Made by a program: the position numbers and the translations under genes
The notes under the pieces: generated by a model
What the model was told of the DNA's origin: nothing
The model's database searches: none
Seen by the model: the letters and a program-made list of their open reading frames with translations, nothing else
Shown: piece by piece, positions 12,878 through 25,076 of the stretch
Position numbering within the stretch: position 1 is the first letter of the stretch
Layout: the number at the start of each line of letters is the position of its first letter
NCBI GenBank assembly: GCA_964057225.1
Contig: OZ059895.1
Coordinates: 5,580,001-5,644,000 of the forward strand
DNA length: 64,000 bases
DNA from: Auanema rhodensis
Lineage: Eukaryota > Animalia > Nematoda
Direction: 5' to 3'

Positions 12878-12891
<14 letters not shown>

Positions 12892-12944
<53 letters not shown>
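12892..12944 (+). repeat. (GA)n microsatellite
   Basis: Direct inspection. Confidence 0.95.
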
Positions 12945-12949
<5 letters not shown>

Positions 12950-13290: not shown

Positions 13291-13655
13291 GAGAATATCT
13301 ATGTGTTCTGTACATTTGATACAAGCTTCTTTGCAAGCTGATATCACACATTTAAGCTGGACCCTATGACATCGGACATGCTTCTGCCATTGCTTGTTTG
13401 AGATCGTATGGTACCAGAAGTTATTAGATGAGATGATTTAATAATATAAGCTATATCTTTTTTATTTTTCATTATAATGTCTATATAACAATTGAATTAG
13501 TAAAATATCTATCTCTACGTGCAATATCTATTTTCTTTTCTTCGTTTTTTCTGTTCTTCTTACTGTATTTATCGTTTTGTGACCTTTTAATCTCAGCTAT
13601 TCCGATTTACGACAAACCATTGAGTGGATAAAGGACGTTCAGATACTGATATGTG

Positions 13656-15665
13656 ATGATGGATGGAGCTAGTTCGCTAACACCATCCTCACCAGGCGGC
13701 GTCATGCCTTCCAACATTCAACAAGCAACATGCAATCCGATGCGATGGGCCCGTAAACCATGGCGTCATCTAGGTCTTTTTACTCGCGAAGAAGCTGTCG
13801 ATGTATGTTTTACAGAATCCAGTATCACAATGTACTGACATATAAAAAGAGAAAAACACACATAAGAATTTGATGAATGCGCACCATTTTCAGCTTCTTG
13901 CTCAACGATTTGTCTCCCAGAAGCGACGTGTTCAGATGCGTGGCTGCGTTCGAATTATCTATTACTGTCATGTACAACGAAGCAGTGGATGTCGTTATGA
14001 AATGAGTGTTTGTATTCCAAATAAAACTGAAGAAAAGGTGAAAATGATTTGTTTACCGTATTGAAATGAAAAAAAAAAACAAATTTTGTTCTCTATAAAT
14101 ATCTTTTCTATTATCTGGATTCTAATTATAGCTTCGTATTGATGATTACAATGTACATACGTGTAATTTGGATGAATCACGTCAAAAACGTCGAGCTAAG
14201 CCTCAAATTGAGGACTTCAATCGCCCTTTTGAGAAGAAGCGTTCACAAACTACTCAATCTCCTCCAGCTATTCCGAATGGTGAGATCATTTTTCAATTTT
14301 TTAAAACAACAGCTTATCAAGTAAACATCACACCATGAAGCCTAGTTTTTTATATTTTTTGAATATTTTTTCTCGAAAAAAACAAAAATCGACAAGTACA
14401 GCATCCGTTTTTCAGATTTATATACATTAGGAGAATCTGTTGTAAATCTGTTACAAGGACTTGAACGACCACAATCTCAATCCTTATCTGATCATTCCGT
14501 TAGTTTATTTCTTTAATTTGAAAACAATTTTTTTAAAACTAACTATATATATAGTTAAATATTTATAAAATATTATAGGAATTAAATAATGTTACATCTC
14601 CCTTAACAGCAACATCATCTACTAATGATAATCTAGCTTGTTTATTCTCTAATTCAATACTTGATACTAGAGGGGTATTTATTTATTTTTTATTTCAAAA
14701 ATTAAACTAAATTTTCTTCTTTTTGATTATAAAAATTATAAATTAATTATATTTTTAAATATAATGATTATTAAAGAAATTTATATGGAAAGAGGTGGAT
14801 ATTGATGTTTTGGATTTTTCAAATCGACCAGATGGTCAAAATAAATTTGTTTTTCATACAACTGATAAGGTATAATAAAAATAATTTTTATATTAAGCAT
14901 AATTAATATATTTGAATAGGGTTCACACTATTCATATGCTTCTCCTCTTATCTCATGTGAAGCTGATGTTGTATCTGAAGCATTATTAACAATGTTATAT
15001 CAATTTGGTTGTCCAACAACTATCTATGTTGATTTACAGTATAAAAGTAATATTTAATTTTTATAAATTAAATTATAAAAATAATAAATTAGATTCTAAT
15101 TTGGAATCATTAATTCATGAAGCTTTTCCTGATTTACATATCATATATCATCTACAACGACGTAATCAAGCTAATAATATCATAATTCAAAGGTATAGTT
15201 AATATTTTTTATTTTTTATTTTATAATAAAAATAATTTAAGACGTGAAAATATTTTAATAAAAGAACGAATATTAGCTTGGATGATGGAGAAACGCACAT
15301 CTGCTTGGGCTAAATACTTGCCGGCAATAAAATATTCACATAATACTGAATATTTAGATGAATTAGGTTAGTTATATGATATAGTTAATATTAAATAATA
15401 AATAAATATATATATATATATAATAAAATATTTATATAATTAAATTATAAAATGAAAAATGTATTATAGGTAGTACACCTATGAATTTGTTTTTTGCTCG
15501 CAGTCAGAATCAACCAGATGGTACATTAGAAGATGATTCATTAAGTGATACATCAAATGGTAAGATTTTAGAAATTATGTCATTATATTCAGCATAAATA
15601 ACAAATTTAATTTTCTTTTTTTTTCAGATTTAAAATACAATCGTAGTCCCTATCATGAGAGTTAA
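13656..15665 (+). CDS. Domesticated transposon-derived protein, 396 aa, 11 exons: MuDR/FAR1/WRKY-like C2HC zinc finger fused to a SCAND3/KRBA2 (Ginger2/TDD)-like integrase core
   Basis: Exons 13656-13802, 13894-14037, 14132-14279, 14416-14498, 14579-14674, 14777-14869, 14920-15046, 15093-15192, 15242-15366, 15470-15559, 15628-15665 (1191 nt, phases consistent). Zinc finger: LFTREEAVDLL...YYCHVQRSSGCRYEMSVCIPNKTEEKLRIDDYNVHTC. Integrase-like part: EVDIDVLDFSNRPDGQNKFVFHTTDKGSHYSYASPL...LYQFGCPTTIYVD...RENILIKERILAWM...WAKYLPAIKYSHNTEY...GSTPMNLFF. Confidence 0.88.
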
Positions 15666-16655
15666 GAGGTAAAACAAAAACTACTATATGTATAAGCATA
15701 ATATACAACTTAACTATTTGATCCGGTCATATAAAATATTATTTATTTATTATATTATCTTAAGAAATATAGATATACATATGTATATATATAATATAGA
15801 ATATTATAACGGGAAATTATATGAATTTTCATTATTTTATTACTTTATATTATAAAAACAAAATCTTTATTATCATATAGATATCTGTAAAATATATTTA
15901 AAATTCCATTTCTTTTGAAACATAATAATATCAAATATAATATATACTTGTTTACAAAATAACTGAATAAACATGATTTTTACGTAAAATTACGTAAAGT
16001 ATTACCCTGGCAGTATGATCGGACACTATATAAAACATAGATTAACCAAAGAAAATACAAGAACGAACCGAAATATCGAGATCACATAATATTCCATGAT
16101 ATTGATTAATAATATTATATATATACATACATATATATTAATATTATTAAATGTAAAAAATATATATTCAAGAATAAGAGAAAAAGAAATAAAGAGAATT
16201 GAAATTTAAAAAATAAAATATATTAATTATTCAAAATAGGGAATGTTATATCAAAGTGATAATATTCAAATAATGAGATAGAATAACTAACTTAGTTATT
16301 ATATACTTCATATAAGCATATTTAAAATTAAAGTTTTAGTAAAATAAAAATTAAAAACAGATTGTCATAGATATTTAAATAGTCACAAAATAGTCCTGAG
16401 AAGAAATTGCTTATAATTAGATATTTAAGGATTATATTGCAACTACAACCAATGTATCCAAATAAAAGAATAAGGAGAGAGAGAGAAAGAGAGAGAATGA
16501 GGGATAGATGGAGGGGGAAGAGGTTTAGAAACATGTATATACACGAAGATTTGAATGACGTTTGAAAAATGAATTAATGTCAAATTTAGAATCCTTTGCT
16601 CTCGTAATTACAAAGTTTTTATGAAAAGAAATAGAGTCATGCCAGATATGAAAGC

Positions 16656-25076
<8,421 letters not shown>

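Follow-up and report, generated by a model that had tools for sequence, protein, structure and literature searches.

A probable ancient domesticated integrase gene of Auanema rhodensis and other clade V nematodes, with a predicted WRKY-GCM1-type finger

Does a gene of the nematode Auanema rhodensis that couples a small N-terminal finger to an integrase-like C-terminal half belong to a mobile element or to its host, and what would its protein do? The gene lies in a stretch of 64,000 nt (assembly GCA_964057225.1, contig OZ059895.1, positions 5,580,001 to 5,644,000; hereafter the window), and the original prediction, made from the letters alone, described it as a host gene fusing a Mutator/WRKY-type zinc finger to a Ginger2/SCAND3-like integrase. 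Our analysis favours, with a probability of about 80%, an ancient domesticated two-domain integrase gene of rhabditine (clade V) nematodes, consisting of a WRKY-GCM1-type finger and an rve core. Literature searches returned no nematode integrase-derived host gene, and none with a WRKY/FLYWCH-type finger replacing HHCC.

The predicted open gene of 11 exons was borne out, with the exons joining into a single frame of 1191 nt (Table 1) and all ten introns being of the GT..AG type and 46–136 nt in size. The spliced product aligned unbroken across the junctions to ten independently predicted orthologues (41–54% identity), and the exon 2 product was 85% identical to the Auanema sp. protein; Pfam searches of ten single exons gave nothing useful. 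Among 31-mers sampled from positions 13500–15800, a share of 0.43 was present in each of four runs labelled 'RNA?' from one study, which is close to the share of exons plus part of the UTRs (0.38–0.51 expected by arithmetic). The share for 31-mers of intron 3 was 0.00 in three runs of the same study (two of these four and a third), and 1.00 in DNA runs. The gene is real, single-copy and expressed, with the exon junctions and the joining of both halves in one mRNA predicted from these word shares and from homology.

Table 1. Features of the finger-integrase gene and its downstream neighbour (positions in the window)
Feature	Position	Strand	Description
Whole coding span	13656..15665	+	11 exons, 10 introns, 396 codons plus stop; colinear with orthologues
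'cgttcag', 15 nt 5′ of the ATG	13635..13641	+	Possible trans-splice or 5′ UTR acceptor, read from the sequence
Exon 1, aa 1–49	13656..13802	+	Variable N-terminus, then conserved MRWARKPWRHLGLFTREEAVD (first strand and start of helix)
Exon 2, aa 50–97	13894..14037	+	Basic strand VSQKRRVQM, then RIIYYC74 and C82RYEM; finger strands 1–3, first two putative Zn ligands
Exon 3, aa 98–146	14132..14279	+	LRIDD strand and H106-T-C108 (last two putative Zn ligands), then basic tail KRRAKPQIEDF
Exons 4 and 5	14416..14498, 14579..14674	+	Acidic/Ser-rich linker, poorly conserved
Exons 6–10	14777..14869, 14920..15046, 15093..15192, 15242..15366, 15470..15559	+	Integrase (RNase H-fold) catalytic core, aa ~206–365
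Exon 11	15628..15665	+	Short C-terminal tail and TAA stop; preceding intron common to Dictyocaulus
Tail-to-tail downstream neighbour	16909..24941	−	Multi-exon C2H2 zinc-finger gene; provisionally mnm-2 in the original prediction

Profile and predicted structure identify the C-terminal half as the catalytic core of a retroviral-type (rve) integrase. All elements of the described integrase pattern are present (W..VDIDVLDF..RPDG.NKF, FG.P, D, AWM, W, L, HN), and the model has an RNase H-like fold with integrase topology (b1-b2-b3-a1-b4-a2-b5-a). The top 50 Foldseek matches in the PDB were all integrase catalytic cores (PFV, ASV, RSV, MMTV; E 3e-6 to 6e-5, probability 1.00), integrases were also the sole matches in a profile search of the PDB, and in the Atlas the core matched rve at 0.95 and, by structure, KRBA2-like at 0.88 and GIN1 at 0.82. 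The Pfam rve family (PF00665) gave 15.8 bits, below its cut-off of 32.6 bits, with a weak match in 5/10 members (best E 0.0024). Sequence homology to genuine integrases was found in the reverse search: run against 146 ORFs, the family HMM matched LTR-element integrases of this genome at 21–29 bits (E 6e-9 to 1e-6). The alignments spanned as many as about 150 columns and paired the D1 and D2 columns of the family with those of these integrases. The proposed Ginger2/SCAND3-like affinity was upheld as far as the rve core and its nearest structures are concerned, which include KRBA2-, SCAND3- and GIN1-like proteins (TM 0.81–0.88), but this list does not single out Ginger2, as Maverick-type chromo-integrases and viral integrases were almost as close (TM 0.81–0.85).

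A homodimer of the core was predicted with a score of 0.80, against 0.00 for the best of three controls; the runs agreed in at least 88% of contacts, with a partner pLDDT of at least 85. This mark is reached by 21/30 solved pairs of a single chain and by 0/23 solved single chains; for eukaryotes it is reached by 17/29 pairs, but by only one of the seven lacking an older solved relative, and since integrase core dimers have already been solved, the score may reflect model memory.

The protein might still be an enzyme, a domesticated nuclease or recombinase that, like RAG1 and PiggyMac, cuts or joins host DNA, using its core for the reaction and the finger to find the sites. The window protein itself retains D216 and D275, with E315 near the third position, every orthologue is acidic at D1 and D2 (11/11 sequences) and has a Glu at or beside position 315, and the predicted dimer would also suit such an activity. 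R322 is invariant and follows E315 by seven residues, a spacing reminiscent of K159 in HIV integrase. Several lineages have nevertheless exchanged Asp for Glu, each of the two columns being Glu in 3/11 sequences (D1 in Haemonchus and both Trichostrongylus copies, D2 in Auanema sp., Necator and Cylicocyclus), and D/E swaps at the catalytic carboxylates inactivate retroviral integrases. When the HMM is aligned to genuine integrases, Ala or Pro occupies the canonical Glu column and the conserved Glu lies 3–4 residues further on (D2-E spacing of 37–39, versus 35 in canonical integrases), and the loop before the helix bearing this Glu was modelled at a pLDDT of <50. Because of the carboxylate swaps and the shifted third residue, integrase-type catalytic activity appears doubtful on sequence grounds, and we consider an enzymatic role rather unlikely.

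The N-terminal half contains the motif C74-x7-C82-x23-H106-T-C108, preceded by LGLFTREEAVD, exactly as had been described, and the four putative ligands are invariant in 11/11 sequences. They thus form a Cys-Cys...His-x-His/Cys set with WRKY-like spacing that is conserved in relatives, as is typical of WRKY-GCM1 fingers. An AlphaFold2 model of the finger (pLDDT 80, pTM 0.72) shows a helix (residues 18–27) preceding a four-stranded antiparallel sheet (30–38, 41–49, 56–65 and 72–76), with the ligands at model residues 48, 56, 80 and 82. In Auanema sp. numbering C83 ends strand 2, C91 starts strand 3, and H115 and C117 follow strand 4, which are the places expected of the WRKY-GCM1 topology. A fold search of 48,161 chains placed WRKY33 (Z 5.2), AFT2 (4.8), WRKY1 (4.5) and another WRKY domain (4.4) all within the top 13, tied with unrelated sheets, and Foldseek matches (E 0.4–1.4) were likewise tied with generic beta sheets. 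The nearest named Atlas clusters were FLYWCH host factors by language-model features (0.88 and 0.86, followed by FAR1 at 0.82) and WRKY by predicted structure (TM 0.65, followed by MULE at 0.60 and BTB-FLYWCH at 0.59), and all named eukaryotic neighbours (FLYWCH, FAR1, GCM, WRKY, MULE, ZSWIM3_N) belong to the WRKY-GCM1 clan.

None of the Pfam families of this clan (WRKY PF03106, FLYWCH PF04500, FAR1 PF03101, GCM) matched the finger sequence, whether in four family proteins searched at E<=10, of which two were full length, or in ten members at E<=1. A genome-wide search with PF04500 did not match the locus, and a finger profile found only chance matches among PDB sequences (coronavirus proteases). 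Together with fold scores in a range common to any four-stranded sheet, this would suit a small zinc module built on a beta sheet but unrelated to WRKY-GCM1, or one invented within this lineage, with a likeness in spacing only. Such a module would, however, have had to arrive at exactly the spacing of group III WRKY domains, carry its ligands on the expected strands of the model, place four WRKY and AFT2 chains among the top 13 of 48,161, and draw all of its named eukaryotic Atlas neighbours from a single clan, and we regard it as unlikely. The evidence supports a WRKY-GCM1-type finger at the level of motif, predicted fold and language-model features, so that the WRKY part of the original prediction is retained at these levels and not at that of a Pfam WRKY, FLYWCH or FAR1 sequence match. 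Its derivation of the finger from a Mutator element was not sustained, with no Pfam match, FLYWCH host-factor clusters as the closest by features, and no similar finger elsewhere in this genome. The absence of the usual HHCC (H2C2) finger did hold, as neither Integrase_H2C2 nor zf-H2C2 gave a Pfam match, and the WRKY-type finger stands in that position. The proposed fold check of both halves thus returned a WRKY-GCM1-type model for the finger and an RNase H integrase fold for the core.

Given these two domains, we propose that residues ~28–125 would form a zinc-binding WRKY-GCM1-type finger, with an N-terminal helix, a four-stranded sheet and C74, C82, H106 and C108 as ligands, in the place taken by the HHCC finger in retroelement and Ginger integrases. 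The basic strand VSQKRR and the finger may read a specific DNA sequence, and residues ~206–365 would form the rve core, predicted to be a symmetric dimer. If the core dimerises the protein in vivo, as modelled, the protein would therefore bind paired or palindromic sites. The DNA-bound dimer would most likely act as a regulator, chromatin or recruitment factor; cutting or joining of DNA by the protein is possible but less likely than such a role.

Orthologues from Auanema sp. JU1783, Heterorhabditis and some ten strongylid parasites aligned with the protein over its whole length, and the two-domain layout is common to the aligned full-length orthologues. The searches yielded 14 proteins, 12 from Auanema sp. 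JU1783, Heterorhabditis and strongylids (Necator, Ancylostoma, Haemonchus, Trichostrongylus, Cylicocyclus, Dictyocaulus, Strongylus and Cooperia) and two from public-read assemblies, with further members found separately in Ostertagia and Heligmosomoides. In the searches made the family is known only from clade V nematodes and was not found among Caenorhabditis or Pristionchus proteins; profile searching of 5.8 billion proteins (E<=10) recovered no relatives outside the family, and no large Atlas cluster combined the two domains when the whole protein was searched. Twelve extra matches to exon 2 in an exhaustive search were taken as compositional noise, as 0/10 scanned with Pfam carried a finger or integrase family (seven were ankyrin-repeat proteins, and three had no or only scattered weak Pfam matches). 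Public records label family members 'uncharacterized' or 'DDE_Tnp_1_7 domain-containing'. The latter UniRef label, which denotes piggyBac and is attached to Haemonchus and Heterorhabditis proteins, was not reproduced, with no PF13843 match at E<=1 and no piggyBac protein among the top 50 fold matches.

The original prediction had proposed copy number, neighbour synteny and selection as checks, and all three came out in favour of a host gene. A DNA search and a protein profile both gave one copy in the 181-Mb genome, and tblastn, with the window divided around positions 15040–15091 for local BLAST, matched the tail-to-tail C2H2 neighbour exon by exon to the gene 3′ of the orthologue in Auanema sp. 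JU1783, Cylicocyclus nassatus and Dictyocaulus viviparus. This neighbour is therefore common to four species with the window included. Introns were compared by an exact spliced aligner with a minimum exon length for Auanema sp. and Dictyocaulus: 9/10 are common to Auanema sp., and in Dictyocaulus the phase is kept at 10/10, with 7/10 at the identical alignment column. Purifying selection on the gene is evident from the coding comparison, with pN at 0.13 in the finger, 0.32 in the core and 0.40 in the linker, against a pS of 0.72–0.88; pN and pS are given instead of dN/dS because the synonymous sites are saturated. Single-copy syntenic orthologues across several genera, common introns and purifying selection are what is expected of a host gene.

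A more specific role is suggested by the biology of the host. In the programmed DNA elimination of Auanema rhodense every internal chromosome break falls on a palindromic motif of 29 bp (bioRxiv 10.64898/2026.08.27.747507; 10.1101/2025.08.21.671558). The finger-integrase protein might read this palindrome and either cut it or recruit the cutter, as a nematode counterpart of ciliate PiggyMac. A domesticated DDE-type protein with a putative sequence-reading finger and a predicted symmetric dimer would be suited to this, and the family is present in two Auanema species and was missing from the Caenorhabditis and Pristionchus proteins searched. To our knowledge, neither C. elegans nor P. pacificus eliminates DNA. 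The family is, however, equally conserved in strongylids and Heterorhabditis, for which we know of no report of elimination, and the catalytic residues are non-canonical, making this role a long shot.

It is less probable still that the two halves are separate neighbouring genes, joined in error by gene predictors and by the present model. The linker is poorly conserved, as could be expected of such an error, but a single open frame runs through all 11 exons with phases that fit at the junctions, gene models built independently for at least ten species contain the same fused protein, the phase of the linker introns is maintained in Auanema sp. and Dictyocaulus, and the only lone halves found in any species were clear fragments lying on short contigs. 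An active or recently active transposon gene with a native finger and integrase architecture, to which a DNA-binding-type finger N-terminal to a DDE core would correspond, is refuted for this locus by its single copy, the lack of TIRs (only 12-nt chance inverted matches in the 1.5-kb flanks), ten conserved introns, synteny kept across genera, and the contrast with at least 150 canonical rve copies in this genome (58–72 bits, nearly all in open frames without internal stop, many of 2,000–3,100 aa).

This agrees with the intron-rich host gene of the original prediction, and we consider the gene to be an old domesticated integrase because it is single-copy, lacks TIRs, is syntenic, has kept its introns and has a constrained finger. 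Its history may have been a chimera of two transposon superfamilies, fusion to a host finger exon, or descent from an unsampled element with this native architecture; sequence searches reached no transposon family, and the Mutator and Ginger2 chimera first put forward is one possible history among several.

The family is conserved in important parasites (Haemonchus, Necator, Ancylostoma, Trichostrongylus, Ostertagia, Dictyocaulus and cyathostomins), and may have gone unstudied because it was not found in C. elegans. The gene is a clear example of one domain taking the place of another as a transposase was domesticated, and its host, Auanema, is tractable in the laboratory and amenable to knock-outs. 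The gene is also an inexpensive candidate to examine for the DNA-elimination machinery of rhabditine nematodes, although this link is speculative. With respect to that reading only, PiggyMac/Tpb2 and RAG1 are likewise domesticated DDE proteins kept as single host genes, but they derive from other superfamilies (piggyBac and Transib, respectively) and their catalysis has been demonstrated, whereas that of the nematode protein is doubtful.

GIN1, KRBA2 and SCAND3/ZBED9 are vertebrate host genes derived from Ginger or Gypsy-type integrases, and like the nematode gene they are single-copy and keep an rve-type core. The predicted structures closest to the nematode core are those of the KRBA2-like, SCAND3-finger and GIN1 clusters, but no sequence search joined these genes to the nematode family; they are not orthologous to it and carry H2C2, KRAB or SCAN modules, whereas the nematode gene carries the WRKY-GCM1-type finger. 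Ginger2/TDD elements, known from the nematode Trichinella, likewise have a DDE integrase-type core that is followed by neither a GPY/F module nor a chromodomain (Bao et al. 2010, PMC2836005). Their transposases are associated with an H2C2 finger, 50–300-bp TIRs, 4–5-bp target-site duplications and several copies (PMC2836005), none of which, including an H2C2 finger N-terminal to the core, is present at the nematode locus. The FLYWCH factors (C. elegans PEB-1 and FLH-1/2, Drosophila Mod(mdg4)) are likewise animal host proteins with a WRKY-GCM1-fold finger, and among named clusters those of FLYWCH come closest to the N-terminal domain in language-model features. They lack an integrase core, however, and their motif ends in H-x-H, whereas that of the nematode protein ends in H-x-C, and Pfam FLYWCH matches neither the family nor the locus. 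MULE transposases and their derivatives FAR1/FHY3 follow the same logic, placing a helix-preceded WRKY-GCM1 finger ahead of a DDE domain with the RNase H fold (Babu et al. 2006, PMC1702500). One family of MULE fingers shares the HxC ending, and was described from plants, fungi and a microsporidian rather than from animals (PMC1702500). The MULE catalytic domain is of the Mutator/TnpA type with a helical insert, whereas the core of the nematode protein is of the retroviral integrase type.

The window gene consists of 11 exons separated by ten GT..AG introns of 46–136 nt, and the exons, read from the sequence and joined by script, form a single frame of 1191 nt encoding 396 residues, which reproduced the coordinates, motif and intron count of the original prediction. 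The N-terminal part of the protein contains LGLFTREEAVD followed by C74-x7-C82-x23-H106-T-C108, while the C-terminal part reads W..VDIDVLDF..RPDG.NKF...FG.P...D...AWM...W...L...HN. Homology supports the predicted exon chain, since the spliced product was colinear with ten full-length or near-full-length relatives (41–54% identity), with every junction undisturbed. An indirect sign of expression and splicing came from word shares: 0.43 of the 31-mers sampled from 13500-15800 were present in each of four runs of one study, presumed to be RNA, where by our own arithmetic 0.38 would be expected from exons alone and 0.51 from exons plus both UTR pieces. Words from intron 3 had a share of 0.00 in two of these four runs and in one further run of that study, and of 1.00 in seven DNA runs with the same or a sibling label.

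Features of the window gene, its surroundings and loci used for comparison
Feature	Location	Strand	Basis or remark
GA/AG dinucleotide microsatellite	12880-12947		flanks the gene; direct orientation, not a TIR
Window gene	13656-15665	+	sequence reading and scripted exon joining
GA/AG dinucleotide microsatellite	16475-16497		flanks the gene; direct orientation, not a TIR
Multi-exon C2H2 zinc-finger gene, putative mnm-2, tail to tail with the window gene	16909-24941	-	protein matches to same-position genes
Bona fide FLYWCH-domain exon (locus L017 of the searched Auanema genome)	G000:C6:4295208-4295339	-	38.8 bits, over cut-off
Dopey/DOP1 gene, upstream neighbour in Dictyocaulus viviparus	L016:1-9109

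The window gene is a host gene rather than a transposon, and the proposed domestication is borne out by its single copy, missing TIRs, common introns, synteny and purifying selection. Its DNA occurs once in the 181-Mb genome, with other matches limited to short AT-rich intron pieces, and searches with exons 2 and 9 and with the profiles of finger and core matched no other locus; near-identical copies flanked by TIRs were not found. Comparison of the 1.5-kb flanks showed no inverted repeats beyond 12-nt chance matches, and their only common sequence was the GA microsatellites, in the same orientation. Exact spliced alignment placed all ten introns in Dictyocaulus in the same phases (7/10 at the identical alignment column, 3/10 inside the gappy linker formed by exons 4–5), and nine are common to the window gene and Auanema sp. 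Downstream of the orthologue, and in tail-to-tail orientation to it, Auanema sp. JU1783, Cylicocyclus nassatus and D. viviparus likewise have a C2H2 zinc-finger gene; its exons come in the same order as those at 16909-24941 of the window, with 50–94% protein identity between the counterparts. No match to the D. viviparus upstream neighbour was found upstream in the window; as far as tested, the synteny is thus conserved on the downstream side only. Synonymous sites were saturated (pS 0.72–0.88), with a pN of 0.13 for the finger, 0.32 for the core and 0.40 for the linker, which means that finger and core are both under strong purifying selection. In contrast, the same genome contains at least 150 canonical integrase cores (406 candidates) scoring 58–72 bits, nearly all in stop-free open frames, many of which are 2,000–3,100 aa long. 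Many of these cores have identical scores, and the set suggests young, possibly active LTR-retrotransposon families concentrated mid-chromosome.

The assignment of the C-terminal half as an integrase core, as originally predicted, is secure because Foldseek, ESM Atlas, PDB profile and reverse HMM searches all gave integrases. The model (pLDDT 72, core blocks 85–95) has the order b1-b2-b3-a1-b4-a2-b5-a-a, a predicted element order that is that of the integrase catalytic core. The top 50 Foldseek matches in the PDB were all integrase cores (foamy virus, avian sarcoma/Rous, MMTV; E 3e-6 to 6e-5, probability 1.00), and integrases were the only matches in a PDB profile search. Atlas features gave rve clusters (0.93–0.95), and Atlas structures gave KRBA2-like proteins (0.88), a SCAND3 finger plus rve cluster (0.88), GIN1 (0.82), chromo-integrases (0.81–0.85) and a giant-virus integrase cluster (0.84). 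The reverse search, in which a family-core HMM run against 146 ORFs matched the LTR-element integrases of the genome at 21–29 bits (E 6e-9 to 1e-6), some across the whole core, is convincing at the sequence level. Pfam rve was sub-threshold in 5/10 members, and Pfam scans of family members lacked an HHCC finger, GPY/F module or chromodomain; the evidence picks none of Ginger2, Maverick or Gypsy as origin of the core.

Modelled as two copies, the core gave an ipSAE of 0.80 (highest of its three controls, 0.00), a mark passed in the benchmark by 21/30 one-chain pairs and 0/23 solved single chains (17/29 in eukaryotes, and only 1/7 with no older solved relative). Runs agreed in at least 88% of contacts, with a partner pLDDT of at least 85, and in the predicted interface the copies meet through the last helices and the end of helix 1, which is also the pairing surface of retroviral integrase cores. 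Since integrase dimers of this kind are among the solved structures, the score may reflect what the predictor had already learned, and the result shows likeness rather than binding.

The first aspartate of genuine integrases aligns with D216 of the window protein (W210+6) and the second with D275; the invariant D219 of 'LDF' was rejected as first aspartate, as it aligns with 'GP' of genuine integrases. An acidic residue stands in both columns throughout the orthologues; the first is E in the Haemonchus protein and the two from Trichostrongylus, and for the second this is so in Auanema sp., Necator and Cylicocyclus. The position of the canonical glutamate is taken by A or P, with a conserved E315 (in RRE) 3–4 residues later (spacing from the second aspartate 37–39) behind a poorly modelled loop. 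The alignment points to an acidic pocket that is kept and to canonical chemistry that is doubtful, and we consider it unlikely that the protein is enzymatically active.

The four proposed ligands of the N-terminal finger are invariant in 11/11 sequences, as are RIIYYC, GCRYEM and RIDD. Modelled by AlphaFold2 from the family alignment (pLDDT 80, pTM 0.72), the Auanema sp. domain consists of a short strand, a helix and four antiparallel strands, with the first Cys ending strand 2, the second Cys beginning strand 3 and H-x-C right after strand 4; this predicted placement is the geometry of WRKY-GCM1 fingers. The basic and nearly invariant VSQKRRV forms the first core strand and, by its placement in the model, occupies the position of WRKYGQK, which contacts DNA in WRKY domains; VSQKRRV may likewise contact DNA. 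The preceding helix is shared with the transposase-linked WRKY-GCM1 families, of which a helix ahead of the sheet is a trait (Babu et al., PMC1702500).

Fold searches with the finger model were suggestive, not decisive. The best Foldseek match had an E of 0.36, with WRKY domains and AFT2 recurring in the list, and the top 13 of 48,161 chains in an exhaustive structural alignment included WRKY33 (Z 5.2), AFT2 (4.8), WRKY1 (4.5) and a further WRKY (4.4), at scores shared by propeller blades and other sheets. Atlas features gave FLYWCH (0.88 and 0.86), FAR1 (0.82), GCM and ZSWIM3_N/FAR1, Atlas structures gave WRKY (TM 0.65 and 0.62), MULE/SWIM (0.60) and BTB-FLYWCH (0.59), and our own finger model also matched a MULE cluster. 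Pfam families of the WRKY-GCM1 clan had no sequence match to the finger, and a PDB sequence search returned chance matches only. The FLYWCH model run over the genome matched another gene but not the window gene; the L017 exon was the only clear match, and is unrelated in sequence to the window finger. With its invariant ligands, fitting predicted fold and WRKY/AFT2, FLYWCH and MULE neighbours, the N-terminal domain agrees with the WRKY-GCM1-type finger originally predicted, and we put the probability of this fold at about 0.85, although the finger is filed in no named family of the clan.

Word-indexed searches with the closest orthologue (P0001, from Auanema sp. JU1783) and with a family profile gave 14 proteins of the family. 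Twelve are named, all from clade V nematodes (Auanema sp. JU1783, Heterorhabditis, Necator, two Ancylostoma species, Haemonchus, Trichostrongylus with two copies, Cylicocyclus, Dictyocaulus, Strongylus and Cooperia), and two are from public-read assemblies without a name. Exon 2 by itself, as query of an exhaustive phmmer search, gave two full-length proteins and two fragments as true relatives; its remaining matches were rejected as noise (of ten scanned with Pfam, seven were ankyrin-repeat proteins and three had none or scattered weak matches). A cluster look-up added Heligmosomoides and Ostertagia, the latter being one of the exon 2 fragments. The profile search of protein databases gave no further relatives, even at E<=10, and no Caenorhabditis or Pristionchus member was present among the proteins searched. 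Trichostrongylus colubriformis has two distinct copies on two contigs of one assembly (P0021, P0025), which are either products of a duplication in that lineage or haplotypes left uncollapsed. A divergent 111 aa member (P0004, 65% identity in exon 2), from an ENA metagenome contig of 855 bp, probably derives from an otherwise unsampled free-living rhabditid. UniRef names the Haemonchus (P0022) and Heterorhabditis (P0023) proteins 'DDE_Tnp_1_7 domain-containing protein' (piggyBac transposase), a label that looks wrong, as the Pfam scan had no such match and the fold is integrase-type; other database records are hypothetical or uncharacterized.

The window protein would most likely be a dimeric, sequence-reading DNA-binding protein from a transposase/integrase ancestor, in which the finger would supply specificity and the core pairing, perhaps with DNA or metal contacts; selection has most likely kept the gene since before the Auanema/strongylid split. 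Gene regulation, chromatin marking, factor recruitment and DNA processing are each possible roles. Auanema rhodense removes two thirds of the germline DNA from its somatic cells, and a 29-bp palindromic motif is present at all 28 internal breaks, with the machinery 'as yet unidentified' (bioRxiv 10.64898/2026.08.27.747507; 10.1101/2025.08.21.671558). A dimeric finger-integrase protein, found in no Caenorhabditis or Pristionchus protein searched, is an obvious kind of candidate for this machinery, but such a part is very improbable given the irregular catalytic residues and the equal conservation in strongylids and Heterorhabditis, for which we know of no report of DNA elimination.

For the origin of the gene, a chimera of two transposon superfamilies, as originally proposed, exceeds the evidence, since no Mutator relative was detectable for the finger and the core is not assignable to Ginger2. 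A genome-wide profile search gave no similar finger elsewhere in the genome, and the nearest named neighbours are FLYWCH clusters by language-model features and WRKY by predicted structure; FLYWCH proteins in animals are host factors. The literature searched on WRKY-GCM1/FLYWCH plus integrase, Ginger2 and domesticated transposases in nematode DNA elimination contained no such family or architecture. Membership in Ginger2 fails on three counts, as Ginger2 transposons have an H2C2 finger, TIRs and several copies (PMC2836005), whereas the window gene is without all three. A domesticated integrase gene is of a known kind, and is here joined to a finger class previously unseen with such a core.
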